Origin: Oikopleura dioica
Taxonomy: Eukaryota > Animalia > Chordata
Direction: 5' to 3'
DNA length: 64,000 nt
Assembly (NCBI GenBank): GCA_907165135.1
Contig: OU015567.1
Coordinates: forward strand, 10,974,001 to 11,038,000
The notes under the pieces are model-generated. The model did no database searches, was not told where the DNA came from, and saw only the letters and a list, made by a program, of their open reading frames with translations. The position numbers and the translations under genes are program-made. Shown here one piece after another: positions 7,091-63,100 of the stretch; position 1 is the first letter of the stretch, and the number at the start of each line of letters is the position of its first letter.

Positions 7091-10000
7091 ATGAAAGGTT
7101 TGAGTTAGTGAGTGTCATCGCATATTTACCATTTTTTAGTCGTCCACATTCAGAAGAAGCACCTGAAAAGGATAATCGTCGCGATTTTCATCTTCAGCTG
7201 TCTCGTTTCTTTCTACTTTCACTCAGACAGTAAACCGACTTCATCAAAACTCCACAAAAAGTCCGAGAAGAAACACAAAAAGCACCACTCTAGCTTCAAC
7301 CCCGAACTCAAAGATGATCCAGTGGAAGACTCCCTAGACGCTCCATCCTTCGATTCAAAGAACGAAATTCCCGATTTTCAATCTTTTAACGAGGATGAAG
7401 AAAAATCTGACGAAGAGATTCAGCTGGAGAAAGAATCCTACGGAGACGGATTCAAAAAGTGGCGCCTTGAAGAACTTGATCCGACTGATTACGAGGGCTG
7501 GCCAAAGTTGACGAATCGAGCTGGGAACTACGAGCAACGGCCGGAGATTCCAGAGGTTGGATCTGAAGGACATGATGGCACCAACACCGGGGAAGGAGGA
7601 CTTTCTCCGATTAGACTGACTTCTGATGACCAGAGAAAGGTACAAGCGGCTCTCGGCCTTTGGGGATTCAACATGGTAGCTTCGGATAAAGTCAATATGG
7701 ACCGAATTCCCGCTGACTTGCGCATGGAAGAGTGCAAGCGATGGGACTACCCAGACAAACTTCCTGCTGTTTCCGTTATCCTCGTCTTTCACAACGAAGG
7801 CTTCTCCACTCTTTTGAGAACAGTCCACTCTGTGGTCAACTATTCGCCTCCAGAGATGCTCCACGAAGTTGTGATGCTTGACGACGGCTCAACGCGAGAA
7901 TACATCACTAACGGAACGATTGACCGGTACATTGAACGATGGGACGGCCTTGTGAAGATTTTCCACAACGAAAAGCGAGAAGGGCTCATTCGCGCGAGAA
8001 CAATCGGAGGAAAGCACTCGACTGGTTCTGTTCTCGTCTATTTGGATGCTCACTGCGAAGTTGAACCCAACTGGCTCCCTCCTCTTGTTACACCTATTGC
8101 CAAAAACTATAAGGTAAACTCACTCTCTTAGAATATCAGACTCGATCTTCCAGGTATCTACTGTCCCGATGATCGACTCTATCGATGGAAACACTTACGT
8201 CTTCGAGCCCCAGCAAGGAGGAGACGAAAATAACCTGGCCAGGGGCGCGTGGGACTGGAATTTCGACTGGAAGCGAATTCCGTTGAACAAGCGTGAGAAA
8301 GCCCGCCGTCAGACTATCTCTGAGCCTTTCAGAAGTCCCGGTACTTGAATTTCTATGACTTATTCTTTGATTTTATTTGAAGCAATGGCTGGAGGTTTGT
8401 TTGCTATCTCTCGGAGATGGTTTATTGAACTCGGCTGGTACGATGACAAGCTTGAAATCTGGGGCGGAGAGAACTTCGAGTTGAGCTATAAGTTGTGGCA
8501 GTGTGGAGGAGAGTTGCTTTTCGTCCCGTGCTCTCGCGTTGGCCATACTTACAGAATGCCTGGTTGGGGCGGAAACGGAACACCAGATGAGCTCAGAGGT
8601 AGTCAGTGTTTAAAATGGGCTGTTTGTGTCTTCTTTAGGGAAAAACTTCATCGCCATCAACTACAACCGAGTAATCGAAACCTGGTGGGATGAAAACTAC
8701 AAGAAATATTACTACCAGCGCCGCCCAGAAAACAAAAATGTCGATGTCGGCGATCTCACAGATGTTCTTGCAATCAAGGTTTTAACTTACTTGGGTAGAA
8801 AGTGCGAATCATTATTTAGGAAAAACTTCAATGCAAGGATTTCTCTTGGTACATGCGCGAAATCGCGTATGACATTCCAAAGTACTGGCCGATGGTGCAG
8901 CCTAAGAATCAAGCGTGGGGCGTCTTGAAAAACGAAGGGACCGGCCTTTGCCCGAATTCTCGCAACTCGAAACAGGTAGATTACCCGGACTATCTCTACG
9001 ACACGGAAAAATCAGAAGAAGAACTGGCGTTTTTGGAAAATTTATACCAAGAGCAGATTTTTGATGCGTTGAGGGTACTTGGTTGGGGGATGTTTTCTTG
9101 GCGCAGTTTGGAATATCCAAACTGTTTCTTTCTAAATTTGAGTCGATCCAAATTTATTTGAAAATTTAGGCCGTTCAGCGAAATGCTCAGAATGTGAGTT
9201 TTATAGGAGTTTGATTGGACTTAGTTTTACCTTTTTTAAATTTGATAAATGATCTCACTTCGTGAACTTTTAAACAATTTTAGGGAGAAGCAATCCAAGC
9301 TGATGCTGGCTGCAATGTTCGTCTTTCTCTCACTTGGCGAGAGGATATTCGAATAGGTTCTTGAAAAATGCTCAACCGTTCTTCAAAATTCTTGTTTTTC
9401 AGGCGATGGACCTGTTAAAAACAATGCAATGTGCTGGGACGATTCTATGGGTGCTAACAAGCGAATATCCTACTGGAGCTGTCATAATGGCCACGGAAAC
9501 CAGCTCTACAAGTATCTCCCAGATACCAAGGTACCAAAGGCCTCGAAAAACTGATTCTTTGAGCCAGAGTTTGAAATTTTCGTGACTCGCGAGCGGCTCA
9601 CTTGAGAGCGAGCGAGCACGAGCATGATGCTCTTTGTGCTCCCGAGCACATTTATTTCAGAGTTCGCGCTCTTTGCGCTCGCGAGCGCATTTCATTTCGC
9701 GCTCTCGCTCTCTTGGCTCTCGAGCACTGGCCGAATTGTGCTCTCGCTCGATCGGCTCTCGAGCTGAAAAAACTGACTCGCGAGCAGCTTTCAAGTGCCT
9801 CAAATGATTCGGCGGCCCCGTGACTAATTCCATCTGAGTCCCTGTCACAGGAGTTAGCACCTCGCGGTGGGCATGTTTTATCTGTTTACTCTCGGCTTTT
9901 CGCATTCTGCTGCCGAGATTACGGACCTAATGAATCCTCAAAGAAATTTATTTATGAAATTGAATAATTATGCGAGAAAATTATTCTTTTAATTTTGCTC

Positions 10001-10461
10001 GCGAGCCGCTCGTGAGTCAATTCCATGGCGAGCACGAGAGCAGCCGCTCCCGCTCGTCTAGCTCCCGAGCATTGCCGACATATGCGCTCGTGCTCTCTGC
10101 GCTCGCGAGCGGGTTCAAATTTGGGCTCGTGCTCTTATGGCTCTCGAGCCAACTCATTTTCATGCTCCCGCTCCCCTGCTCTCAGAGCAATGATAAATTT
10201 TCGCTCTCGCTCTTTTCGCTCGCGAGCATTTGCGAGCATTTCAAACTCTGCTTTGAGCAATTATTCTAGCAAATCTACCATCCTTCCCATCGGCTCTGCG
10301 TTCAAATGGTAGAAGACTACCTGATTTTCGCCGCTTGTGATGGCAAAGAACCTAACCAGAAATGGACTTGGAGCGAAGTCGACGAAGAAGTACTCGGCCG
10401 CGCTATGAAGTCACGAAATCAACCCGGTGACGATCCACCAGAGCTCGATTACATTCAATAA
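7091..10461 (+). CDS. GALNT7: Polypeptide N-acetylgalactosaminyltransferase, GALNT7-like
   Basis: ATG 7091. GT-AG introns at 7098-7139, 8114-8153, 8341-8382, 8599-8638, 8779-8819 and 9531-10269. Type II TM segment, DxH motif (YLDAHCE), [37 protein letters not shown], ricin-type lectin (WREDIRIG...CWD...CHNGHGNQ...[10 protein letters not shown]...NQKW). Stop at 10459-10461. Exon structure at 8975-9285 is unresolved. Confidence 0.92.
9565..10250. mobile_element. hAT-type MITE (686 bp) in the last GALNT7 intron
   Basis: 13-bp TIR CAGAGTTTGAAAT / ATTTCAAACTCTG; exact 8-bp TSD CTTTGAGC (9557-9564 and 10251-10258); interior rich in GCTC/GAGC motifs. Removing it leaves a 45-nt intron. Confidence 0.9.
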
Positions 10462-30600: not shown

Positions 30601-33600
30601 CCGAGCCCTTAGTTTATACCATCAACAAGACAAGACCAATAATTGTTCAGAGCGTACTCGAGAAGTGACTGCTGTTTACCCTAAAACCGCTACCTTAGAG
30701 GTTTTTTTCATGGCGTTAATAATTATTAGTTTTTCGTTAATAAATACGAATTTTTGTTTAGTATTTTAATATAAACAACTATTTCTCGAAGAAATCGCTA
30801 ATTAACCCATCTTTCCCATGGAAGAAAAACGAACCTATGTCCGAACATAGAAAAGAGAGCAATTACGGTCTTGGAAGACGGCTTTGGAACGGGAAGGATG
30901 ACCTGATAATTATGCCCTGTTAATGACTATTCCGCGAGATTGACACCCCGAGCGCAGCATAATTTCCATGACGCGGATTTCGGGATTTTCGAATTTCATT
31001 CGCGAAAATCTCTACCGCGAAAAGTCATGAGCTCGGCCTCGAGTGGTCGAACTTGTGCAGATCCGTATTCAGGAGAGAGGTTTAACGGCTTATGTACACT
31101 TGTGACTTTGGGAACGTTTTTAGAGCTCTTTGAAAAAGACAATTTCAAACTGTTCGACTGTCAAAATTAAAATCAATCAATGCGAAATCGAAACAACTCG
31201 CAAAGAATTCTTCGCGCGAAAGGGTAATTTTTAAAGAATGGAACGAACGCGTTGAATGAGTGTTTAACTAAATATTTGCATTCGAAGCTTCTTTCAAGTC
31301 ACGTTTTCGCCATTTTCCCCTTCAAAATTTGAAATTGGGAAAAAAGAGATTATGAGCCAGCCGAGTCTCTGTCTCAGCCAGTGCTGCTTGTGATCGGGTT
31401 ATTCGATAATTATCATATATAAAAACATCATATCTTATGTGCGGAAGAATTGATAGTGTGTACCACGTGATGTCGCCGACACACAGACAGACCTATCGGA
31501 TACTTCCAAATCTCCGAGAAAACCGCGGATTAAGGTTATACCAAACGTGTGGCTCCGGCTGGCTTAGGTTCTCTTAGAGGCCTCATCCCTGCGTGAGCTT
31601 TTTGGTATCTGCGCTTTTTTTTATCTCGCTTGGGTTTTTTTTCTCAAGATCAAGGTTTAAAACTTTCGTTTTAAAAAAGAAATAAATGCAGTAGGAGCGG
31701 CGATCTGCGGAAGATCTATCATGACTCTGCGGAAAAACACACAAGCTGACATTTGTTTGAAATTTTAGAAACGGGGATAATCTCGATGATGATATAATAT
31801 CAATGGAGTGGCTCCCTATTTCTTGGAACCCCGACTAAAAGGAAAACAAAACGATCAAATCAAGTAAAAAAATCGAATAACCTTAAAAAGCTCAAAGACG
31901 AAATCGCTAGCACAATTCAAACTCTCCGGAGCGGCCAATTAGGAAATGGATTTGGAGATTTTCATGAGTTGCAAAGATACGCAAAAAGACGGACTTAGTG
32001 AAAAATATTTAGAGTGTCTATTTGCGCTTAGTCTTGGACGAGGTTGAGGGCGAAACAAGGGTTTGAGGTCGGACTATAACATCTCTTCAAAACAGAAAAC
32101 TTGACTAGGCGATTTTTGTTCGAAAACTCGTTATTCAATTCAAAACTTTCTTTATACCCACGTTGCCTATTCTGTCAGCCAAGTACCCATGCGCACGCTT
32201 GAGCTCTCAAGCAGCAGAATTAGATTTTTTGTCTTTTTCGATGAGCTGGTGGCGGCACTCGAATTCGCCGCTGTATAAAAATGCTCTGGACCGCCCAAAT
32301 TAGTTTTTCATCTCTAAATGCTTCGAGCGAGCTTCCCAGATTGACGAAAAATCACATGTCGCCAGTTTATGCGTCTAAAGAATTTCAATAGACAATTTGC
32401 TAAACAAACTGCTGATCTTCTTATTGAGATGAAAAAATAAGGGTTTCAAGATATTTTTTTCTTTTATATAATTTGGATAAGAAGGGCGCTAGAATTTTGC
32501 AATGAATAATGTATATTTTGTCTAGCAAGTAGAATTGGATAATCCCTGACCTTAGTTGGGGAAAAGTGAGAGTGTATATTTATGCATGGCCGGATGGTCA
32601 GAGTAAGGAGTTATTCGGTATACAAATGGTATAACCACGTTCTCGAATATTTTCAGCATATTCCGCCCCTTGAAGATTTCTTCCGCTCGTCGGTTTTCAA
32701 GACTCTTGTTATTCAATATCTATTAACCGCGCTAAGGAAATAAGAAAGGGCATTTTTAGAAAAAGGGGATAAGTTCTGAGAGAGGGTGATCTTATTGTTA
32801 AGGAGGTCAGTAGCTCCTAGCTTGCACGTTTTTTATAAATGAATTTGAAACTTTGTTGCGACTGCAGACTACTGACAGAGACGGAAATAGAATTCACTTA
32901 CAATAGGATTTTCGGTAAGGGCTTAGGTACTTATCACGTGAGAAAAAATCCATGACACAGAACTACAGGTAAGCAAGCATACAATCATCTAAACCTCAAA
33001 TGCTTCCACAAGGCGTCCGCAAATTTAGAAATGGGAAGCAGAGGAGTTCTACTAGAGGAAATCAGAAAATTACAGGTTCGTGGTCAAAACGGGAGAAGGG
33101 GAGTTAAACTTTCCGGTTATATGATGATCGAAAAATAATGAACAGCTAGCTAGGGAATTAGAGAAAGACTAGCAAAGTAGACGTTATTGAAAACAAAGTT
33201 CAAAAAAACAAAGTTCTAAAATACAATGAAAATTGAAATTCAGACTCAGCAAGACTCAGTGAACAAGCTACTTCAACTGGTGGAATTGATGCTAACGCAA
33301 CTAAGGTGAGAGCGTTTCCAAACTCAATTTACATTTATAAAAATGCTAATCTGGAAAGGGCTCACCTTTCGCGCCAACTTCATTAGAATCCTACACGTAC
33401 TTTTTTGTACGTAATTTATGTTAAAACGAACACGGGCAATAAGTAATCTACGTAAGGGAAAATCACAAAAGCTGGTACAAAACTCTCGGAAGGCGGAAGG
33501 GCGCAAGACTCGTGCGTGTCCGTAAACAGAAAAAATAATTTAACGAGATTGTGCTTTAGAACATGTGTCAGGGAAGAGCGCAGTTGAATACCAAAATAGT

Positions 33601-40100: not shown

Positions 40101-43100
40101 ACGGAAAGGCTCAAGGCTCCATATCAACGGCTGTGGTCGTGTTAACACTCGAAGGACAAATTATAGCGTCGATTGATGGAGCAACATCAGCGCAAAATCT
40201 TGATCAAGCGGCGAACATCTTCGCTTTCGTCTTTTTCTGGACAGGAAATCGACCGCTAAATTTGGATTTTATTAAGAATATGGACTTATTAAATCATTCA
40301 TCAGAGAATTTTCTATTTGGGCCCTCAAATTTTTGGAATTAAAACAGTAACTTAAACATCATTGAAATTCGTTGTGAGGGAAAGAGGTAGTTGGATTGTT
40401 TGCGCGTTGGAATATTCAAAAGATGGCTCTTGAAATTATGGGTTTTGAGATGTCCACGATTTTAGCTTGTCCAAATATCGTATTTGAATCGACTGTGGAG
40501 CTAAACGAGTTAATTAGTCACACGTTCTTTTGAGTTTCAGTCCAACTCAGCTCAAACCGAGGAAACTGGCTAAGTTACTGGTAGCTCTTTGACTGAACCT
40601 AAATCCGTAGTTCTTGAGCGGCGGTAAGCCTTTTAAAGATAGCCTCGAATAAAGCCTTTCACGTTCGCACAATAGAAGTCGGCCCCCGCCGGCGCAGCTT
40701 TGCACACAAGTAGTGGAGCTCGTAATTTTCAAGGTTTCATAAATCCACATTCCGCAGCCGCCTTTCTTGGCGCAGGAAGGAAGCTTCTAATTACAGTTCT
40801 CACCCTCTCCTCATTCTTCTTCTATCGCCAGTACCTGCAGATGGCCCTTCTTTCATGGATCGTACTTGTAAAGTTATCAAGATGCTAAGAAGGACCTGCA
40901 GCTTTCTAATTTTTAAATATTCACATTCTAAATTGCGACTATTTAGCAAATAACATCTATGCAAATGAACACTGCATATAGCAAAATAACTGGCTGCTGT
41001 TTTCATTATAGTTCCTGCCCAGGAGTCGCGGAAAAATATATTTTTGACAAAGTGGCGCTCTACTAAAATATTGGATGCTTGAAACCGAACGCTAAATTAT
41101 GACTTTCTAAAATCGTTCATATCTTATCTCCTGACAGATTGTTCCCCGTCGTAAAATGATTTTTGCAACGTTTTAAAGTCTATCTAAAAACGTATGCATT
41201 TTTCTTCATGAATCTTTTACTTTCGATTCTTAGCTAAAATTTTACGGCTAAATTTTCCGCAATTTTCTGCATTATGCAATTTTTGCTTAGACAAGAAAAA
41301 GGACGAGCCCTTATTTTAATGCTTTCCGTCGTTATCTTTTTTTACATGGCAATTATTTGCCAAGCGCTAGAATATTCTTCTGAACAGTAAAAAATGATAA
41401 GTTTCAGCTGCCGATTGAAGGAACCTGGACTCCGCAAAATTTCATCTAAATTCGGATAATCTTGATTTTTGGGATTTGGCTGTTATATAAGTCAACTTTC
41501 TAAAATGAATTTTTTCGACGATTATCGCTAGAATCTTTGAATTGTGAAGAAAAAGATGATCCGATTTCCTGAAAAACAGAAGAGACCATCACGAGTCCGA
41601 CCAAAATTCCACCGATAATCGACCCTACTGCGGCTCCAGCTTATCTTTTAAGGGCTCACAATACGTAACTCATCTTGATTGTCTCTTTCTTCATGCGCCA
41701 AGGAGTTAAATGGCGCAAGAACTAAATAATTATTTTCGTAGCTTTATCAGTGAGCCTTTCCTTGGGATGAGTCAGGTGCGTCGCCGCCTAGGCATAATTA
41801 AAAAACAAGGGTACCCTTCTTTTATTCACATTTCGCGCGATAAACTACCCACAGTTCCAAACGTATCAGCACAGCACGGCCGCAGATGCTTTTTGAAAAA
41901 TTGCACCTCGGAGCACGTGGTGCCCAGCGCGCAACGTGAATCCCGAAAAAAAAATTATATAATTTTGCAAATTGGAATTCCAGCGCACCCGTTTTTCTTT
42001 ATCAAAAAAGAGCCAAATGGAAGATTGACTGATTTACAAGTAGATCAATTCAAGGTTGATTTTCTCCAGAATCAGCAAAAATGAAAGGCTGAAACTGAAT
42101 GGGTTTAAGATTGCGGAGGTCTGCTTCCGCCCGTTCCACGTTGTTCAAAATTGACAAAGAGTCATTTTGTGCTCTTCCGAGGCTTTCCATCAAATGCTAT
42201 AATCACTTTTCCGGCTTTTGCGAAGTCTGATTTTGCACTATAAAACGATTCCATGTACGAACAAAGAAGCAAAAACCCATGATTTCAACTTTTGCTCGTT
42301 TTCTCGAAAACCGCGGTCGCAATTTTCTTTATCTCCCTGAGAGTTATTTTTATTCATTCCTAAAAAATACTCAAGAATCGCGACAACACGTCGTTAAACA
42401 CGTTGTTTGCCAATTCGCAGAGAATTAGGGGCGCAAAAAATCTTGTCTCGACGAAGAAAAAATCCGTGAGAACGATGTCGACAAGATTTTGAAATGAATC
42501 AAAGTAATTAAGGACTATTTTAGTGGCAGCTAAGAGGAATTTTATTTCTTCGGAGGAATTAAATTTAATTAAGAATTAATTGTGAATAAGACAAAAAAAA
42601 AGTAGTTATTGTATACCTAGTTCCAGAAGTTCGTTTTTCGTAACATGCGGTTTATGTTCTATTTGGTGGAAATTGCGGTCGAAGCGACTTTTCGCGACTT
42701 GGAACTAGGAGACACTCTTGTCTAGTTTCAATGCGATTAATCAAGCGATAAACTTGACGGTACTCCATCAACACTTTAGCATAAGAAGCATAAATAAGGA
42801 GCGAGGAAGGCTCTTTTATTACTCCCTTCCACCAAACACGTTTTACTTGAATATAGACCAATCTCATCTGGTTCGATTTCGTTGAATGCCACTCAGTTTC
42901 AGACCCTTCAGATTTTAAATCTAGCACTCGGGGTCCTTATTCTTTGCTTGGTTTTGATGATGCCGACAAAGTCAGATAAGAACGGAGGAAAGGGTCTCGA
43001 AATTCAACTTGAATTTCTTCTGATTTTCGTTGGAACTCGTTTTCGTTGTCATAATTGCATCACGATTCTTGGGAGCGAAACCGTTACAGTATCTCAATGT

Positions 43101-44729
43101 TAATAACAAAATATTTAGGGTGATCCCGGGCTTACAATCAAGGTCCCAATTTATACACTTGACACTAATGGTTATCAACTACAGGTAGGTAATTCATCCC
43201 TGACAAAAGCACCATCGGAATATCCGTCAACGACATATTTATCTTCATACTTGACATTTTCATCAATTATCTCCTTGTCTCTCAGCGTATTAGGGGCGGC
43301 TAGACATTTCATAATTGAATTTTTCCAAGAGAAGAAATTTCAAATTTCGCAAATGTGACTTACCGGAAAAGACGGCAGTGTAGCCAACGTAGTTGGACAT
43401 ATCCACTCGGACCTCTTCAGCCTAAAAGATTTAAAGAGTTACAAAGGTAAGGTTTGTTATAAATTCAAAAGGGCCCCGCTCTTAGGTGAATGTAAATTAT
43501 GACAAAATTCTAGGGTCTCTTTTAGAGATAAAAATCTTACTTTATGCCTTTGTTTATAAGAAATTGGGGAATAAAAAACCGCTAAATTGAGTTCAAATGG
43601 TTCGTCCTTTTTATTTTGACGTCCGTCGTAACGGCTCTTAGATAGAAATCCAAGGCCGAGGAAAAAAAGACCGTCAGACTTTATTTTCCCGTCGTTTATC
43701 AAAATTATTGAAGCTCTCTCAGTTTCGAAAAAATGTGGTCAGATTACTCCAGAGCCTGCGAAAACTTTTTCCACTTCAAAGTTTGAGTTTTCGCTTGTCA
43801 TAATAATTTTCCGGGTTGGTTTTTCTTTTAGAACAAGTTTGGAAGTTGTAAAAAATTAAGTTTGATTATTATGATTGGGAGTACGTGTGAGAAATATTTG
43901 CATTTTCTGGTGCATTAAAATTTTTCGCTCTGACGCGGGGGAGCAGATATTTGAGATGATCATTTTTAGTCCTTTTCTTCGCCCTTAAGTTCATTTAGCT
44001 CTTATATCATGTTATGATTTCTGATCCAAAACAATGAAGTTTGTTCATTCGATATTTGATTTCCGGAAAAACTATCTTTTTCAAACGGGCTCGACAATGG
44101 AACAAAAAACTGGTAATTTTTTATTTTCCGAGATTTCACGCGCTTAGCAACGACCGCAGAAAAATGTCGAGAAAATCGTCGAAAAATCTTAAATTAAATC
44201 TGCCGCCTTCTAATTCTATTTCCTTGATTCCTCTTTCCGAGTGTTACGCAAGGAACATATTGAATATAACACATTGGGCATAGACTAGTGATAATATTCC
44301 TCGAGAGTGCGGCTCGCGAAATAACGACCACTCAATTTGAAGAGTTCTGTGCTTAGATAACGTGCGAAAATTACGTACGGCGATAAATTCTGATGCTCAC
44401 ACGTGATTTCGTGCATAAACTTTCAGGAACCAGGCTGGCAGTTACTTAGAACGTAGCTCTTCACTTTTAGAATCATTAGAATCACTGGCCATTCTCTGAG
44501 CGACAAGATGAGAATATTTTCTATAATAATATTTATATACTTTATAAGAAATATTACTAACGTATATTTCTGCAAGCTCTATAATTTTTTAATAAAAAAT
44601 TGTATTTTAGAAGCCAACTCGCCAATCAGGAAGAAATCGCTTCCAGAGACAACATACCGAGCTCATCAAAAAGAGACGATTTTAACCCTTCCTTTTGTTC
44701 GGAAGAATTTACCTGTATCTGATATTGTA

Positions 44730-47700
44730 GATAATTGAACGCCTCGTTTAATCCGAGCTCCTTATCAGCTGTTTTGTGAGCTGGCTTGTCAAGTAGATAA
44801 AATTGAATCTAAAAAATTGTCAATTTGAAGAAGAAAAAATTGAGAAAAGAGATTCTTACGTAACAGATCTTGTCCCCACAGGTCAATCCTCGAAGCAGGG
44901 GTGGATATTTTGATATCAAACCATTATTTCAACCGTTTTTGATTTGAAATTTCAAAAGATAATCGCAATTTCAATTTTTTCAAATTTCATTGTCTTTGCA
45001 AAGAAAATGATTGTGCTGCCAATTTTGAAATTTCAATCATTTCATTTTTCAATTTTCAAAACTTTTTCAAATCCAGACTCGTTTTGCAGATTTTTTGCAG
45101 ATTTCATTTTCATTTCAAATCTAAATAGGCTCACCGAGCGGGGGCGCCGAGCAGTGAGCCCGCCGAAAATAAACTGGAAAATCTTGCCTATAAAATAAAT
45201 CTTTTGAATTTTCGAATTCGGGAAATTTCTCGCAAGCAATAAACTTTATATAGTAAAAGCTAAAAACTAACAATTTCAAAAGCCCACGAGAGCTGTCGAT
45301 TTCGGAGCATTTCCGACTCTACGCGATTTTTTCGGAAAATCCGCCGATGCTTCCCAGTCGTCTTCGTTTGCCCAAGATCGCCGTTTGCCCAAGTTAATAT
45401 ATTTGATGTGAATAAATTTTGATTTATTGACAAAAATCGAGTGGTCTCCGCTCGCCTAAGTCGCTTTTTCCCCGAGATCGTCGTTTGCCCAACTTGAGGA
45501 AACGGCGATTTGGGTAAAGGGCGATGTGAAGTAAATTTGATTTATTCATCGCTTAACTTTATTTACAATATTGTTATTGACTCCAACGTTAATCCCGGCT
45601 TCTCCAATGGCAATCTTGGCTTCAACAACTTCAATCATGGTAACCGTTGCTCCGACGTCAACGGTGGTTTTTCAAGCGTCAATCCCGGCTTCTCAGACGT
45701 CAAGCTCGACTTCACCAACGTCCATTTCGGCTTCTACGTTAACCCCAGTTTCACGAACTTCAATCTTTCGGGCTCTGTTGACAATCCTGGCTTCTCCAGC
45801 GTCAATCCCGTTCCTCCTAGATTGGGTTGACGTTGAAGAAACCAGGATTAACATTTGCTAAGCCAGGATTGAAATTGCTGAAGCCTGGATTGACGATATT
45901 GAAGCCAGAATTGACGTTGAAGAATGCACGATTGGCGTTATTGATGCCAGGACTAATGTTTGAGAAGTCGGGATTGACATTGGAGAAACAAGAATTGAAG
46001 TTGGTGAAGCCAGGATTGACGTTTGAGTAGTCGGGATTGACGTTATAGAAGCCAATGAAAAAATTTATTGATCAATCAATTGAAATTATTTCACATCGCC
46101 GAAGATCTCCGTTTCCCAAGCTGGGCAAACGGCGACTTGGGGAAACTGCGACTTGGGCAAACGGAGACCACTCACAAAGATCCCCGTTTCAAAGAGTTGG
46201 GCGAATGGCGACTTGGGGAAACGGCGACTTGGACAAACGGAGACCACTCGATTCTATCCGTTTCCGCGCTGTTCTCTGATCCTCCGATCTGATCAGAGCA
46301 GTGTTTGAAACAGTGTTTGAAAAATGATGAGCAAGCGCTCATTCTCACTCACTCATGTAAAATTTCAAGGCCATTGCTCGCGCTCACTCGCTCACCTTAA
46401 AATTGCGAGATCTCTGCTCGCGCTCACTTGCGCTCGCTTACGACCTATTTTCGTAAAAATAACGTCCGATTTGCGAAATCTTTCCTGATTTCATTTTTAA
46501 GGGCGCTACCGTCGATTCCCCAAGTTGACCCTTGAGTAACTCGGGACTTAGTTATCTAGGCGGTCCCTATTTAGGCGTATTGAATAGATCAATCCTAGAC
46601 CTTAACTTTAACAGAGAGGTTTCTCAATTGATTAACAAAAAACGGCTAAATTTCGGCTTGAAGTCAACATCTTTGCCAAAATGGCCTAAATAAAGGCTTG
46701 AATAACTCAAAAATAAGCCTGATAACGAAATCTCATTTTATTTTAAACTCATTATTTGAACATTGATATTTAAAGTGAAAGAAGGATTTTTAAGGGATCC
46801 CCTCCCGATTTGAAAAATTTCATCGAGAGCTTTTGCTTGGTATAATTTTAAAATGATCATCGTCTGAGGATCATTTCCATATATTATGTCAAGGGGCGTA
46901 CGTCACGTGATTAGCCGTGACAAAGGCTTGAAAATGGCTTATTTTGATGAAAAAAATTACTAAGAAAAAATTCGCAAAATTTTCGACTTTTTAAAGTCGA
47001 CGAAATCATATAAATGAGGGCTTTTTAGAAAGCTTAGACGAAGCTGAATCAGAAAAAATAGGTCCTGATAAAATCAATTGCCACAAAGAGGTGCTAGAGA
47101 GCATAAAAAGTCACAAAAATGGCAAAAAGCAGTCGAAAAAGTTTTTGTTTAGAGAAATTCTAAAATCCTTGACCAAATCGGATGCCTGTACTAGAGATTG
47201 TAGAAGAGGTATCAAGGAAAGTTTGGATAATAAAATAAGGGGAATATATTAGAGGTGAAAAAGTAGTTCGACTTTGAAAATGGCCTAAAACCGGGTTTTG
47301 GCGACTATCAATGTCTTTAGAGCGATTTTTATAGGTGATTCCCCTTATCAAATTTATTTTCTATACTAGAGATTGCTCATTTAGAAATGCTCTTTAAAAT
47401 AAGCCCCTAACCTTCAAGATAGCTAAGCCCGAAAAAGTAGTTCGACCTCAAAGTTGGCGAAATCGGGGGATCCCTTAATGAGAAACGAAAAATAAGAAAA
47501 TTTATTTTTTGAAAATTGTTTCTCAAAAATCTCCCGGGCCTTGAAAATTTCAGTGTTTAATCATCACGAGCGAGCGCTCATGCTCGCTCACTCATGAAAA
47601 AGTTTGGGGCTTCTGCTCGCGCTCGCTCACTCACGTTAAAATCGGGGAACCTTCGCTCGCGCTCGCTCACTCACGAAAAATTTCGGGGCTCTGCTCGCGC

Positions 47701-49170
47701 TCACTCGCTCATCTTAGTTTTGACCATTTTTTGCCTGAGAATCGAATAGTCGGACGAGCGCGGGCGCGAAGGGTCCGATTTTTGGATGGGCGGATGTGCG
47801 CGGGCACAACTCCAATCGAAAGACACGAAAAACAACCAAAACCCACCGAAAACCCACCGACCAACAAAGAAAACGGACGCAATTTACATAGAAAGGACCT
47901 ATTTTACGCAGAAAATATCCGATTTTCTAATTTTCTGTGTAAAATAAGTCCTTTTCTCGGTAAAAAGTCGACTCGGGTTTGACTTTCATGGGATATGCCA
48001 TGAGCAGAGATAGCGAAGCTGACGGCTAAGGTTAGCTTAGCTACCGGGAAATTTTTTTGACCAGCTTCGCTACTCTCAGCCAGGGTTGTAAATCACCCTG
48101 ACCACCGCACCTCGAGGGCGGGGTGGTTGCATAGCACCTTGATATTTTTTGAGGTGGGGTGGGGTGGTCACGGAAGCACCTCAATTTTTCGAAGCCGTGG
48201 CAATGTACGACATTTCCAACTCTGAGTCAGGTTCAGGTGCCTGACTCAGGCCAAAATACTGGGTATTTTCGACCAAGTTCGTAAAATTAAAAAATTTCAT
48301 TTTTATGCACCCTGAGGGTGAGGTGGGGTGGGGTGGGTGGATTTGGATCCACCCTGGTGATTTTTGAGGTGGGGTGGGGGTTCGAAGCCACCTTAGAATT
48401 TTTCAGGGTGGGGTGGGGTGGTTCTCACGGCGAAGTCGAAATGTCGGGGTGGTGTTAGGGTGGGGTGGCTGGGGTGGGGTGCTCTCAGCTACCGGGAGAC
48501 ACTGATGAGATCCCCCCTAAATCATAAAAAATAAAGGGTTCACTAGAATTATCCAAAAGGGAAATAAAGCGGGCTTACGTTTTTCCCCTCCTTGAAATCT
48601 GCAAAAATTCGTTTTTTCAATTTCATTTTTCAAACTGTTTTCAAATCGAAAAACAGGCTTCATCAGCTGAAAAGTGCGTTTTTTCAATTTCAAATTTATT
48701 TCAAAACCGTGCGAGAAGCTTTTCTGTTTGCAATCATCGCACATTTCATTTTTCAACTTTTTTTCATTTGCAAAGCTATTTCATCAGCTTTTTTTTGCAA
48801 TTTCATTTGAAATTTCAGATTTTGAAATGATGAAATTGATGATTCCACTTTTTTGAAAAACGGGTTGATATCAAAATATCCACCCCTGCCTCGAAGGCGA
48901 TTGATGCGCAAGTAGCCGACGCCAGCAGCTGCCGATAGTGCCGTTTGGAACTCTGGCTTTGGGTTGTTCAACGTTATCAACTGACGTGGACAAAGATGTT
49001 AGCGCAAAATAAGCTACAGTAATTCTCTTTAGGATCAGCTGCGATTATCCCGAAGAGTCTTGAACTGTTGAATAACCGACTTTTAGAAATTCTTCGTAGA
49101 ATCGTTCCTTGACAACTGGGCCCATCTCGTTGACATCTGTTATATTTACTTGAAGAAATTTGTGTCGCTT
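44730..49170 (-). CDS. Exons of an unidentified multi-exon gene; one exon interrupted by a 4-kb hAT-like element
   Basis: Reconstituted 120-nt exon (48980-48889 plus 44887-44860) lies between an AG acceptor and a GTAAG donor and reads LITLNNPKPEFQTALSAAAGVGYLRINRLR|GLTCGDKICY. It continues through a 51-nt GT-AG intron into IQFYLLDKPAHKTADKELGLNEAFNYLQYQIQ. Further candidate exons at 43415-43190, 49170-49010, ~50000-49900 and 53070-52850. Confidence 0.55.
45345..46257. mobile_element. Nested foldback element with ~15-bp subterminal repeats (CGCCGTTTGCCCAAG-like) and a central 21-bp minisatellite in inverted halves
   Basis: AATCGAGTGGTCTCCG at 45436 pairs with CGGAGACCACTCGATT at ~46240-46254; GGCGATGTGAA pairs with TTCACATCGCC. 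No clear TSD. Confidence 0.7.
46308..46440 (+). mobile_element. Left-end fragment of a GCTC-rich hAT-like MITE
   Basis: Starts CAGTGTTTGAAA (compare CAGAGTTTGAAA at 9565), followed by GCTCGCGCTCACTC motifs. A similar fragment lies at 47551-47715. Confidence 0.5.
46794..47474. mobile_element. TTAA-flanked MITE (681 bp), GGG...CCC ends (Kolobok-like), nested in the 4-kb element
   Basis: TTAA-GGGATCCCCTCCCGATT ... AATCGGGGGATCCC-TTAA. Confidence 0.8.
47551..47715 (+). mobile_element. Second GCTC-rich MITE fragment
   Basis: Starts CAGTGTTT; three tandem GCTCGCGCTCGCTCACTCAC-type units. Confidence 0.5.
48081..48481 (+). mobile_element. 401-bp GGGGT-rich insertion with an 8-bp direct flank (CTCTCAGC); G-quadruplex-prone
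   Basis: CTCTCAGC at 48073-48080 and 48482-48489; left end CAGGGTTG; repeated GGGGTGGGGTGG blocks; no matching right TIR. Confidence 0.6.
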
Positions 49171-52100
49171 CCCAGCGAAACATTTCTGTTGATGGTTTTA
49201 TCTTGACAGGTTAAATTCATCCCGCGCCGATTTGAAATTAATATTTTGGCGCTCTAAAGTTCCTGTTGGCTGAAATCCGGAAGGCACGGAATTAGAAATT
49301 ACTATCGCCTTGACCTGGTGTCACTCAAAGTCCCCGCAAATTTCATGATTCTCAGCTATCAAACTAAGCCGAAATCGTCAGACAACTCCGACGGTGAAAA
49401 TTAGCCCACCGCGACATCTGTCATTTCTTGTTGTGGGAAAACCAAAGCCTAAACAACGATTTTAGTAAATTGTGCTCAATTCGCGGCCGCTTCTCATTTC
49501 AATTCATCTTTTTTTCGAGGAGGATGACGAAATTAAACTGCGTAATTATGGGCTTCGCTTTCAGCTATATTGGTCAGGTGGGCATCCTTCACAGAAAAAA
49601 GATGTATTACTGATACAGTATCAGTCGCGAAATTTTGCATTATACTTTGAAGTTATTTGGCCAACTCGATTTGCTACCTTAGACTCTTTTTCCAAAGAAT
49701 CAATTAATTGAATCTTTTTTAGTGAGAAAGAAGAGTGCTTTCTGTTTATTGTAGATTGGAGTCTATTTTTAGAATAATGATGAACGTTATGAATGGCGCC
49801 CATGATACAATTAATTAGAGGCTATTTTTTATCAAGAATAAATGGAAAAAAATGATAAGCGGAAATGAGCTGTGAGGTTAATTTCAAAATTACGAACCTG
49901 GACGGCATCGAAGGTCTTATGCGGGTTTGCGGAAGGTGACTCGTTGTAGTAGTAAATCGTGTAGTCAGTGTGGTGGTGATGACCCGCTGAAAACGGCACG
50001 GCTCAGACTGCGCTCGAGAAAGATTACTACTCGATTCTGACACCGACCGTGGTCGATGCTGAGCTGCTTGATTACCACAAATCCAAAATATGCCACCGTC
50101 GTTTTTCGCGAGTTTTTTCGTTATTTTGTTTTGAATAAATTTATGTTCGATTCGCACTTTATAGAATCTGCTTCTATTTGACGTTCTTATTACAAAAATT
50201 TTGTAAAAAAGAAGCTCTTGGAAATTTCAAGCAGTGAGCTGTACTCGTTGGCTTATCTGGCGTCGAGGAAGTGGCCGATGCGATGGAATTTGTAAATTGT
50301 GCCAAAATGGAAAGCGATAACAATGTCCGCTCGCTCAGTTCTAAGCACCACAAAACTCTTGTAAGACGTTTTATTCAAGAATTCTTATGCAAGGTCTATC
50401 TTTCTATTTCTTTTAAGTTCATTTCAAAGGATAATTGTCTGTTCATTTCCTCGAGTGGCCACAAAAGGAGCCTATGAAGGTTGACCCAGTTAAAGTGAAA
50501 ATAACTTCCTGTCTTTTGATCTGTTTGGAATGTTTAATTGGTTTCCAAATGGTTCATTTTTAGAGAAGCTTAGTATCAAGTCTGAGCCGATTCCTGCGGT
50601 TACGGGCTGAACAGAGCGCGTCCTGAGCTGGAGAGGCTGCATGCTTCGTGTTCTGAAAGAGAAAGAGAAAGTTAGTTGTGTTCCCATTCTAAAGGGATTT
50701 GTGAAGTAATGAGCTCATTTACGCAAGCAAACTGACTGGCAAGAGTGTAGCCACGGAAGAGCTATTTGACCAAAACTAATTAAAATGCTAAAGCGTGGAG
50801 GCCATTTCGGACAAGAGGCTTATGGTAAGGACTCCCAGAGTCAGGAGCCTTACGGGCTCCTCCCTTTTCGAAAAGAAAAACAAACACCGTCTGCCATCTT
50901 CTCCAAAGATTGCATAAGGTGCTTAACACGTTTTTGCTTTTTGGGCTGAAAATTTTACGAAATAATTTGATAAAATAAAAAAAACAAGAATATAGTCTCC
51001 AATTCATTTTGTTTGGGGCAAAAACTTTTGGGTAAAAAGTTTCGAACTATTCCTTTGTATGTAAAGATGTTCAATTCTAGCTACTTTCAGCAAGCATCTT
51101 TATTGTTGGTTAATATTGGAGACTCTTAGCTGCCAACGAACTCATTCTTTTGGCCAAAAACAAAACGGGAGCTTAATGAGAAACCATCGTTATCAAATTA
51201 TCAAAAACGTTTTGGGGGTTGATCTTTCGGTAGAATCAAGATAGTCTACCGGTAAACAATCGAGATCTTTGTGGAGAGATAATCAAATTAGTTTCTTTCT
51301 GGAACCTGAGTTGTCTATGAAAGAAACCTTGCTGCTTAGCACTTACTTATTTACTTACTTGTCAGTTAAAGAATTTGAATTAAGTTATTGATTGATTATT
51401 GCGCGGTTATTATTTATGATCGGTAGACTTACGAGTCTTCAGGACTAGCTCCTTCCCAAAAAATCCAATCTTCTGTGGAAAATGCCCATTCAAAGGTGTA
51501 CGCCTGTCCTTTTTTCGGAGTTCTTTTCGAAGACCAAAAGTTCGCATCGATGTATCGCACTTCTTGAGATCCCATTTTGTAACGTTCCAAAAATCTGACT
51601 CTAAGCCGTATCTTTAAAGTTGATCTGCGGGGCTATTTTCACGTAAAAGCATTTCGTGGATAAAGATCGTGGGTTATTGAATTGGGTGAATTTTGATTAC
51701 TGACGTTTTTCAAAAAGCAAAGTCAAAAATGTGGTTAACGTGATTTGAATTTGTGAGTGACATTAACCCCGACAAGGTAACAGACTTTAGAAAAGCGCCT
51801 GAGCGATTGCCGATTTCGCGCATTTCAAAAAGAAAGGAGGCGAAATCTGATTACGCTTTGGGAAAAAAGTGATTGTGGCAAATTTGGCTTGTGGCAGATT
51901 TTAAGTCAGACTTTTTGAAACTCTTTTAGGAAGTTGCAGAAAAATTGCTAAAGCATTGAGTGGTTACTGGGGAAGTTGAAGTGGTGCTGGACCGGTTGGT
52001 AAATTACAGGTTCTGCCTGGCGCGTCTGGTTACATAGATTGTTTTTGGAACGTTGCCTTGTACCAATACTCGTTTGGATCTGGAATCTGCCAAAACCACT

Positions 52101-60179: not shown

Positions 60180-63100
60180 TTATTTGCTCAACCCTCTTGC
60201 GGGCACTTTTAAATTATTGAACGAGAAATAAACTCGTTGATGCCTGTGAAACATTCTTTTAGTGGAACGTTGCTTTAGAAAGGGCCCGCTGTTTGAATCG
60301 CTTTTGCACCTGTGGATTTCGTTCCTGTAGTATTTTAGCGTCTCGTACTCGATCTCCGCCGGGGTTGCGCTGCAGCTGGCTTCTTCGCTATCGTCGGACT
60401 TATCCGCGCCTTGTGTAAAAAAGATTAAAAACAGGCGCTAGAACTCACCGTCTAGATTTTAATTGGCTTATAAGAATTTCCAAGAACTCCGAAAATCAAA
60501 AACCTCAAAGTTATCTTGAGAATGAGACGTTCTAAAATGAAGCTTCACCGGCTTTATGAAGGGTAAACCCGCTTTGCGTCATTTTAGCAATAAAATAATT
60601 TCGAAAGCATAATATGATAAGAAAAGATAGAATCTTATCATTACAAATTCAATATCGCCGTATGTTTACGAAACTCGCTTTTACGAAAAATGAAGTACTT
60701 ACATAATTGCTTGACAAGAATCTTGCGGATGATATTTATGATCAGCTCGACAAAGCCGAAAAAGGTCGCAGCCGAAATCCCCAAAAACAGGCCGAAGCAT
60801 CCTCCGAATGAAGTGACAATAAACTATTACGCGCTATAATACATCCCCTTTGCTCTAAGCTTAATTATTACTAATAGGTTATAACTATAGGGCCTTATAA
60901 CTAAGGGCCTATATTTTAGGGGTGCGGTAAGTTCATATTATATATAATCATTCAATTTATATGTCACTCGAGCCTCCAATGTCTGATAAATATCTGATGA
61001 ATGGGTACTCAGCATACTCTGCAGAAGTGTTTCGTTTTTGTTTCGAAACGTAAAGTATGAAATCATCGTCTGAAATTCGGAACACTTTTCCTTTGATCAT
61101 CAACTCGTTCGTTTCCATCGTAATTAATATCGAAGCAATGTCTTTCCAACGGTTCAAATTTGATTGCAGGTGAGTCAATAAGACAATTATAATTGTTGTT
61201 TTGAACAATTCCTACGTTGACTTCAGTATCGGTCGTAGTATTTATCCACTAATAAGATATAATCGTTTGATTGAAGAACACAAACAGATTTTGTTTTTAT
61301 CTCACCTTGTGCCCGTATTGAATCTGTTTGGAATGAGGCGTTGAATGATAGCAGTCCTTTTCTCTCCCGTTGATAAAACATAGACTTACTCAATTGAATG
61401 CAAGGAAGTACCGTTAAATTTAAGTTAAGGGCTTAAGTATCTCGCAAGTTTTAGTTGAAATAATTAATTGCTACCTGTCTGTTTGGTCCAGGGGTCTAAA
61501 TTCGCAGTGCGAATTCGCTTTATTGCGAAGCGATGCGAAGCGAAGCGAATTCGCTTTCGCTTCGCTTCGCACTGGAGAGCAGAATTCGCTTCGCTTTCGC
61601 TTCGCAAAAATTCCCAAATTTTCGCATAGATTTTCGCACATCAAGCGACTTTGCTTGATCAGAATGATCTTTATCAACAGGGCTTATCTAGAATCGAAGA
61701 TGATCTCCTCTCCTATCGAGCAAGGGTGACCATTCGGGCAAGAAATCGTCGATTGGCCATCCGAATGCCCGGCCGAAATGAAGGGCCAAGAGTCGCACCG
61801 TGCGAATGCCCGGTCGAGTTGGTGATGGGATTTTCAATAGATAAAGGTTTGAAAAATAAGTTTCGAGAGGCTTTTGATTCAGTAAGAGGAGCAAGAGAGC
61901 AAAAATAAGTGTAAAGAATGCGAAATTTAAGAATTTTCCTCGGCGCGGGCTAGACTGAAATGCCCGAAAGCGCTGAATTCCCCGAAAGTGCCGAACTTGC
62001 CAAAATGCCCGCTTTTGCCCGGCCAAATTTAAGGGGCTGAGAATGCCCGGCAGAACACATTTTGCCCGGAAATTGTCCGTTTTCCCCGACTTCCCGATGC
62101 CCGAACGGTCACCTCCGCTATCGAGTTTGTTACTAACTTGGAATTATCAACAGTTAGATCCACCATTCGGCTTATATTGACGAGCTGAAAAAGGTACAAT
62201 AACAGATTTTTTTGTTATTTTCTGCTTCAAAAATAGGTTTTTGAAATCATCTTTGCTTTTGAGTGGCTGATTGTTAAAGATTCTTGCCGAGAATGCGTTT
62301 CAATTCAAGCGAAAAAATTTTCGCTTTTTTTCGCAATTTTCAATGATATTTCGCTTCGCTTTCGCTTCGCACATGGGCGAAGAATTCGCTTCGCTTTCGC
62401 TTCGCAAAAAATTTGAAAAAATGGTTCGCTTTCGCTTCGCTTTCGCACTAGGATTTCGGCTGATATTTAGACCCCTGTTTGGTCAATAATGTTAAGTTCT
62501 TGTTTGTACAAGTTTGTACTTAGGAGAGCATTTATCAATGATCATGGATCGTTTTGAATTCCGGTTGATATTTTAGCCATCAAATTGATCAAAAATTGTT
62601 ATAAAATTTAGAATTCGTTCTGTTAGTGATTTTTAATTGCCGAAAATGGATGAAACTGGCAATTTTTCTTGGCGATTCTATGATGCACCAATTAATGGCT
62701 CTTTTATAATTATTAGTAAATTATATTTCACTACACAAGTGATCTTCTTATCAACAGCTCCTTATCGCACTTACAATTCACCCGGTCAACCTTCGATTTG
62801 AACGCCAGCAACTCTCGTTTTACGCAGCTTATGTGGTCTGTTCTTTGAGGTTTTCATAATGATTATTTACGAATTAATAACGAAAGTGAAAATTCGCGGA
62901 GTTTCAGATTGCTTTTTCAATAAATTTGGCAAAATTGGATCTACGCACTGCGAAAGCATTAGAGCTAGAATTTTGATAAATATTGCTTTCTCACGCGGAG
63001 GCAGAAAATGAGTTCTGTTTCTTGGGGTAGATTTTAAATTTTCTAATTTCATATCTCGTCCACGTGCGGAACCAAACTAACTCGATTTTGATGTTTTTCA

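Follow-up and report, generated by a model that had tools for sequence, protein, structure and literature searches.

Introners are DNA transposons that make introns by way of their target-site duplication (TSD), as related for Micromonas and Aureococcus (Huff et al. 2016, as cited in PMC13326754 and PMC11282704), and surveys of them extend across eukaryotes (PMC9860276, PMC12130899). That introners recruit a TSD into a splice site without altering the mRNA has already been described (PMC9860276, PMC11282704, PMC12130899). Introner families are also listed for an Oikopleura sp. TARA Arctic metagenome-assembled genome (PMC9860276 supplement), and non-canonical introns of the larvacean Fritillaria borealis are traced to miniature transposons (Henriet et al. 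2019, as cited in PMC11282704 and PMC13326754). The Oikopleura lineage tolerates G(A/C/G)-AG introns (PMC8008620, PMC7072748, PMC13326754); in the Okinawa assembly of Oikopleura dioica 11% of introns are non-GT-AG and the median intron is 49 bp long (PMC8008620), and many GA-AG splice sites have been reported in the species (PMC7072748). Among animals, O. dioica is the textbook example of fast intron gain and of plentiful non-GT donors. Here, a 64-kb window of the O. dioica genome (OU015567.1:10,974,001-11,038,000) was analysed, in which a 4-kb hAT-like DNA transposon interrupts a 120-nt coding exon of a gene on the minus strand, and the locus is described as read on that strand. The element is probably a very recent, non-autonomous insertion into the middle of an exon under constraint, and not an established intron.

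The locus shares several features with introners: the element is non-autonomous, has inverted ends and a TSD, lies inside a coding exon and is absent from the same site in a relative. One splice dinucleotide would likewise be part TSD and part element, and removal of the element with one TSD copy would leave the mRNA unchanged. The mechanism itself has already been described for introners, and this locus is an introner-like candidate. Introner families, however, have median lengths of 30-654 nt (PMC9860276), whereas the present case is a single 4-kb copy of a putative intron, and its donor would be GC. The TARA introners belong to the same genus and illustrate that transposon-like repeated introns occur in larvaceans, but as listed they are ~200 nt long and have mostly GT donors, no GC donor being listed and their ends and TSDs being marked '?'. 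Fritillaria is likewise a larvacean in which genic transposon insertions gave rise to lineage-specific non-GT introns tolerated by the major spliceosome; these introns have mostly AG-AC or AG-AT ends and occur alongside duplicated U2AF subunits, whereas a GC-AG intron would fall within the usual Oikopleura G(A/C/G)-AG class. Introns of the Fritillaria AG-AC type were rejected for this locus, where the introns read are GT-AG or G(A/C/G)-AG.

Read on the minus strand, the sequence runs …ATCGC, CTTCGAGG, CAGGGGTGGATATTTTGATATCAA, the element interior, TTGATATCAAAATATCCACCCCTG, CTTCGAGG and ATTGACC…. The two TSD copies are identical at 8 of 8 bases and the two terminal inverted repeats (TIRs), which begin CAGGGGTGG, at 24 of 24, with weaker complementarity further inward. 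hAT transposons are typified by an 8-bp duplication and by termini that open with CAGGG. Both are found here, as the TIR is short, starts CAGGGGTGG and is of the (C/T)A(G/A)NG type, and the 8-bp duplication corresponds to a single target copy in a related genomic sequence (L001, see below). The CAGGG… terminus resembles that of maize Ac. Wessler and colleagues, in work dating from 1987 to 1991, reportedly found that exonic insertions of maize Ac/Ds are spliced from pre-mRNA. Maize Ac/Ds elements are hAT members with an 8-bp TSD and a terminus CAGGG(A/G)TG…, as here, and their exonic insertions are removed via donors near or in the element end; in maize, in contrast, removal is usually imprecise, with several sites and leaky alleles, and is not known to involve a scarless GC-AG cut built from the TSD.

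The limits of the element were further supported in two ways. A 17-base terminal word occurs at two places in the window, which are the two element ends, where shuffled sequences give an expectation of 0.12 even at up to 3 mismatches; and RNA reads from related copies, in one run, exit the element precisely at 44896, thereby marking that terminus independently. The interior consists of tandem arrays of 21, 16, 40 and 39 nt, foldback arms and G-rich repeats, contains no open reading frame (ORF) longer than 106 amino acids, and yielded no transposase domain or remnant when 10 of its ORFs were searched against Pfam. Without a transposase ORF the element fits a non-autonomous hAT, and it is best called non-autonomous hAT-like. 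A hAT transposase, which comprises a BED finger, an RNase-H-like core and an hATC dimerization domain, would in that case come from an autonomous partner. A second copy was not found within the 64-kb window, to which the searches for element copies and for gene paralogues applied. The perfect TIRs and TSD suggest that the insertion is young, probably too young for any test of selection on the putative intron. The coordinates of the element, of the proposed intron and of the host exons are collected in Table 1.

Table 1. Features of the interrupted gene and of the inserted element, in window coordinates.
Feature	Position	Strand	Description and basis
Upstream exon	49898..49986	-	…GHHHHTDYTIYYYNESPSANPHKTFDAVQ; covered by RNA reads, which stop at 49898
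35-codon upstream exon	49081..49185	-	KCFAGKRHKF…EEFLK (KCFAGKRHKFLQVNITDVNEMGPVVKERFYEEFLK); translation, L001 alignment, RNA loose ends
Interrupted exon, 5' part (91 nt)	48890..48980	-	Diverged-lineage RNA over 48890-48954; L001 alignment
TSD copy 1	48889..48896	-	CTTCGAGG; its final G would open the proposed intron
Non-autonomous hAT-like DNA transposon	44896..48888	-	3,993 bp; ends read from the sequence
TIR, transcript-5' end	48865..48888	-	CAGGGGTGGATATTTTGATATCAA; holds the C of the GC donor (48888) and the rival GT donor (48883-48882)
Putative scarless GC-AG intron	44889..48889	-	4,001 nt; hypothetical, from sequence logic
TIR, transcript-3' end	44896..44919	-	Pyrimidine-rich terminus …TCCACCCCTG just before the acceptor
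TSD copy 2	44888..44895	-	CTTCGAGG; AG at 44890-44889 is the proposed acceptor
Interrupted exon, 3' part (29 nt)	44860..44888	-	Followed by donor GTAAGA at 44859
Downstream 32-codon exon	44713..44808	-	IQFYLLDKPAHKTADKELGLNEAFNYLQYQIQ; RNA-covered; preceded by a 51-nt GT-AG intron
Next downstream exon	43364..43421	-	AEEVRVDMSNYVGYTAVFS; its start matches the RNA loose end at 44713
Probable further exon	~43183..43299	-	…APNTLRDKEIIDENVKYEDKYVVDGYSDGAFVRDELPT; frame continues from the preceding exon; 3' boundary uncertain

To characterize the interrupted gene, its exons were queried one by one against 1.84 billion representative proteins. The 32-residue downstream exon gave one match, to residues 62-93 of P0001 (E = 8e-12, 94% identity), an unnamed ORF called across the exons and introns of L001, which is a 667-bp ENA metagenome contig. 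L001 is genomic DNA of a related Oikopleura that follows the window colinearly, introns included, with 82-86% identity. Its exon is uninterrupted (…RINRLRELTCGDEICY, then gtaagg) and holds a single copy of the target (CTTCGGGA), and its likeness to the window ends at the first TSD/TIR boundary and restarts at the second TSD copy. The element is also missing from mRNA of a diverged lineage (see below), in which the exon is again uninterrupted, and is thus absent from the orthologous position in both. Differences between window and L001 in the exons lie mostly on third codon positions (23 of 30, or 77%); at codon positions 1/2/3 they number 0/2/7 in 48890..48980 and 2/0/8 in 44713..44808. Against the diverged RNA reads, third positions hold 14 of the 20 listed differences by our own count. 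This third-position bias shows purifying selection on these exons, and the host gene appears to be lineage-restricted. Pfam searches on three host exons matched no family, and no paralogue of the host gene was found within the window.

The short 3' part of the exon (44860-44888) stands apart in its divergence, with 11 differences from L001 in 29 nt, of which 8 fall on its ~10 third positions, the amino acids being mostly kept. The neighbouring exons have third-position changes at 7 of 21 and 8 of 32 sites, and the excess of silent changes is local to the insertion site. An ORF at 48756-48998 (minus strand), which starts in the exon and continues into the element, had no match in the representative protein collection. 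An 8-residue match within the window at 32517-32540 was rejected as chance, as were two JGI metagenome contigs (L002 and L003) that contain a 20-base conserved exon word and have no other similarity to the window.

Around the insertion, six consecutive exons (49986-49898, 49185-49081, the interrupted exon, 44808-44713, 43421-43364 and ~43299-43183) have open frames that continue in phase from one to the next, and each lies between an AG and a GT. The GT at 49080 and the AG at 48982-81 define a canonical 100-nt intron between exon 49185..49081 and the interrupted exon, and the loose ends of RNA reads after 49898 and before 48954 match exon 49185..49081. The host introns on the two sides of the interrupted exon are 51 nt and 100 nt long, and G+C is ~40%. 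These values, and the many G(A/C/G)-AG introns noted in the window, are in keeping with the Okinawan lineage of O. dioica (PMC8008620). The earlier note on this DNA had placed a 4-kb hAT-like element within a coding exon, with coordinates and a description that proved accurate to the base, and had stated that removal of 4001 nt restores a 120-nt exon between a normal acceptor and a GTAAG donor, in frame with the next exon, which holds. Its view that the flanks form one exon is borne out by L001 and the diverged-lineage mRNA, both of which carry the exon uninterrupted, and by the third-position bias. The gene model has to be amended upstream, where the neighbour of the interrupted exon is not 49986..49898 but 49185..49081, an exon missing from that model and recognized from its translation, the RNA loose ends and L001.

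Further downstream on the minus strand, a stop-free stretch at 41503-41640 encodes a membrane-helix-like segment, AVGSIIGGILVGLVMVSSVF, with a polar tail behind it. The host gene may have its C-terminal exon here and would in that case encode a single-pass membrane protein.

The position of the element relative to its TSD creates a potential intron with the exact limits of the inserted sequence. The last base of the first TSD copy and the first C of the TIR together make the starting GC, and the second TSD copy supplies the closing AG. Excision of 48889..44889 (G/GC…AG/G, a slash marking a splice or codon boundary) leaves 91 + 29 = 120 nt with the frame restored, bounded by the AG at 48982-81 and the GTAAGA at 44859. 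The joined flanks encode LITLNNPKPEFQTALSAAAGVGYLRINRLR, a G from the split codon G/GA, and LTCGDKICY, in phase with exon 44808..44713, and the putative pre-mRNA sites are GAG/GCAGGGGTGG on the 5' side and …ATATCCACCCCTGCTTCGAG/G on the 3' side. Splice sites composed of element ends and TSD, with the reading frame kept, are thus present on paper. The claim that the element forms an exact GC-AG intron stands in part: the exact G/GC…AG/G removal is possible on paper, whereas its forming such an intron is not supported, there being no reads across junction 48890/44888. The associated generalization, that any CAG-starting element with a TSD ending in AGG offers a GC-AG cut, follows by simple logic.

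To look for splicing of the element, four RNA runs under the O. dioica label (three oligo-dT and one single-cell) were aligned to 44400-50100 (5,701 letters). All aligned reads are only 90-95% like the window, save one at 95-99%, and no read in the four runs is at least 99% like it. RNA of the Okinawa assembly's own lineage, from embryo, immature-adult and adult libraries, for comparison, matches its genome at 99.14% (PMC8008620), and O. dioica is a cryptic species complex, with splits ~25 and ~7 million years ago, under one species label (bioRxiv 10.1101/2023.05.09.539028). At 90-95% identity the reads stem from a diverged lineage or a paralogue, and so the absence in the four runs of any read across 48890/44888 is uninformative on splicing of the element and carries no weight either way. 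The reads cover 49986-49898, 48954-48890 and 44808-44713, and they pass from 48890 to 44805 with exactly 32 letters between, which are 29 nt of the 3' exon part and 3 nt of the next exon. This segment encodes RELTCGNEICY-L, where the window has RGLTCGDKICY-I. The joint from 44805 to 48890 was accordingly rejected as a splice of the element, the 32 intervening letters being the homologue's intact exon. Two distinct classes of homologous transcript are present in one run.

The same alignments contain two irregularities at the 5' side of the interrupted exon. In 48929-48980, the second class of reads keeps GTCCACGTCAG and 19 nt and then skips ~31 nt to 48929, and could represent another paralogue, another allele or an odd isoform. 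In 48954-49080 (L001:30-112), the diverged-lineage mRNA has the junction …CTCAA/AGAGTTCC, whereas the canonical AG of the window, at 48981, lies 27 nt further upstream. This junction near 48954 admits no GT-AG reading but only GT-CA, TC-AG or AG-TC, and is flanked by the direct repeat CCTTAA(A)GTC. The acceptor GTCCACGTCAG, conserved in L001, is there out of frame with the AAA/GT donor, and the window carries a 43-nt insertion relative to L001 within the region, which may be another non-canonical or transposon-born intron.

The fate of transcripts that carry the element is probably mixed. The TSD ending in AGG and the TIR starting with C would create G/GC…AG/G in the pre-mRNA, and a spliceosome that accepts GA, GC and GG donors could excise the element and one TSD copy with no scar. 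Some transcripts would be processed in this exact way, through the GC donor at 48889 and the AG at 44890-89; others would pair that AG with the GT donor at 48883 and retain 6 additional nt; and others would be polyadenylated prematurely or spliced at internal sites. On this view the insertion would produce a weakened or null allele, one that is probably rare or private to the sequenced animal. That exact GC-AG splicing can be detected at all seems slightly doubtful, and it is unlikely to be the main fate.

The best-surviving alternative is that the element is already a newborn, efficiently spliced and scarless GC-AG intron, with U1/U6 engaging G/GCAGGG (48889) and U2AF the AG at 44890-89, and with mRNA and protein unchanged. 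Several points favour this alternative, which we nevertheless regard as unlikely, and some of them weigh directly against the preferred reading of a recent insertion that is not an established intron. The geometry is exact and restores the frame. No other AG occurs in the 105 bases before the TSD AG, a length reached by only 8 of the 3,816 AG-to-AG gaps in the window, and the TSD AG lies behind a pyrimidine-rich TIR end (13 of the 20 bases preceding it are pyrimidines). The share of non-GT-AG introns in the Okinawa assembly, 11% (PMC8008620), the many GA-AG sites (PMC7072748) and the tolerance of G(A/C/G)-AG introns in the lineage (PMC13326754) are in keeping with a GC donor, and co-option of a TSD as splice site is documented for introners (PMC9860276, PMC11282704). 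Pairing of the TIRs would set both sites side by side, and the missing junction reads are neutral, the aligned RNA having come from another lineage or a paralogue.

Against efficient scarless splicing stand, besides the lack of a junction read in RNA of the wrong lineage, properties of the element itself. The GC donor fits the U1 consensus at only 5 of 9 positions (-2, -1, +1, +3 and +5) and competes with an in-frame GT donor 6 nt downstream. The same terminal stem that brings the two proposed splice sites together, predicted at -71.5 kcal/mol, spans and would bury both. In transcript sense the element carries 8 AATAAA signals, the first at 48700, only 188 nt inside, together with 5 strong GTGAG[TA] donors and 4 T-rich acceptors. 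At 4,001 nt, the proposed intron would be ~80 times as long as the 49-bp species median (PMC8008620). Finally, for a random 8-bp target and an element of the form CAG…CTG, the computed probability of the exact GC-AG phase is 1/64, and that of some exact GN-AG phase ~6/64, so that a single GC-AG case can be chance.

Removal through the GT within the TIR (CAGGG/GTGGAT, 48883-82) and the same AG at 44890-89 is a further alternative, and a distinctly unlikely one. This donor lies 6 nt inside the element and in frame with the acceptor, so that its use would add 6 bases, or two codons, and change …LRGL… to …LRGRGL…. CAGGGGT is also common to the element at 61490-62476, which makes the GT part of the family's conserved end. 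Maize Ds, also a hAT element, is spliced from exons via donors in its own end. On the other side, the four RNA runs, of another lineage or paralogue, contain no supporting read, the site GGG/GTGGAT is weak at -3, -2, +4 and +5, and it sits within the terminal stem. The weakest alternative, that the gene copy is dispensable or dying, for example as a redundant paralogue, so that the insertion is neutral and the transcript irrelevant, would agree with the lack of reads at least 99% alike in the four runs, with the two homologous transcript classes in one run, which suggest more than one copy or allele, and with the lack of a Pfam domain in three exons, but is improbable given the six consecutive open exons, in phase with one another and each with AG and GT at its borders, the 77% of L001 differences at third positions, missing reads that cryptic species under one label explain (bioRxiv 10.1101/2023.05.09.539028), and the lack of a paralogue within the window.

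A broader proposition is that the hAT elements of this Oikopleura lineage, with their conserved CAGGGGT… ends, are true animal introners, in which a TSD ending in AGG would give a scarless GC-AG intron and any other TSD an intron adding 6 bases via the TIR GT, the AG-free, pyrimidine-rich ends and the stem being adaptations for removal. This is offered tentatively and is rather unlikely to hold. If it were true, these elements would be a concrete and ongoing source for the species' massive intron turnover and its excess of G(A/C/G)-AG introns, and the present 4-kb copy would demonstrate tolerance of large elements as well. As it stands, the locus documents the first half only, a young insertion into a constrained exon, and without splicing the element would amount to a common loss-of-function variant. 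An exonic transposon with a ready-made scarless cut would allow a direct test, in a chordate that can be cultured, of how an insertion turns into an intron.

Related copies of the element were encountered in the RNA data. In run X5, ~11 diverged-lineage reads over 44896-45066 (plus strand) derive from a relative of the element in which 122 nt (44920 to 45043) are missing and the flanks are different, and relatives of the 4-kb element are thus present and transcribed in another lineage. Inside the element, 45435-46253 forms an 820-bp foldback module whose 21-nt repeats point either way, and 48117-48482 is a block of GGGGTGGGGTGG repeats. Reads of all four RNA runs match the latter block with 2-3 mismatches, indicating that it is repeated elsewhere.

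Two other elements and one candidate intron lie in the same window. At 9565-10250 (plus strand) there is a hAT-like miniature element of 686 bp, with a perfect 8-bp TSD, CTTTGAGC, and TIRs matching at 13 of 14 positions (CAGAGTTTGAAAT). Its TSD is like CTTCGAGG at 6 of 8 positions, which hints at a target preference ending in GAG that would favour AG acceptors. At 61490-62476 (plus strand), a ~990-bp miniature element has ends that start CAGGGGTCTAAAT, is flanked by TTTGGTC and has its first seven bases, CAGGGGT, in common with the 4-kb element. Lastly, a 172-nt stretch at 60802-60973 (minus strand) starts with GC and ends with AG between flanks that read …LSDIG/G CFGLFLGISAATF. Read by eye, these flanks are the second membrane-helix motif of a DEG/ENaC-type channel, and the stretch is a candidate GC-AG intron splitting DIGG, with ends (GCTCGAGTGACA…) that differ from those of the 4-kb element.

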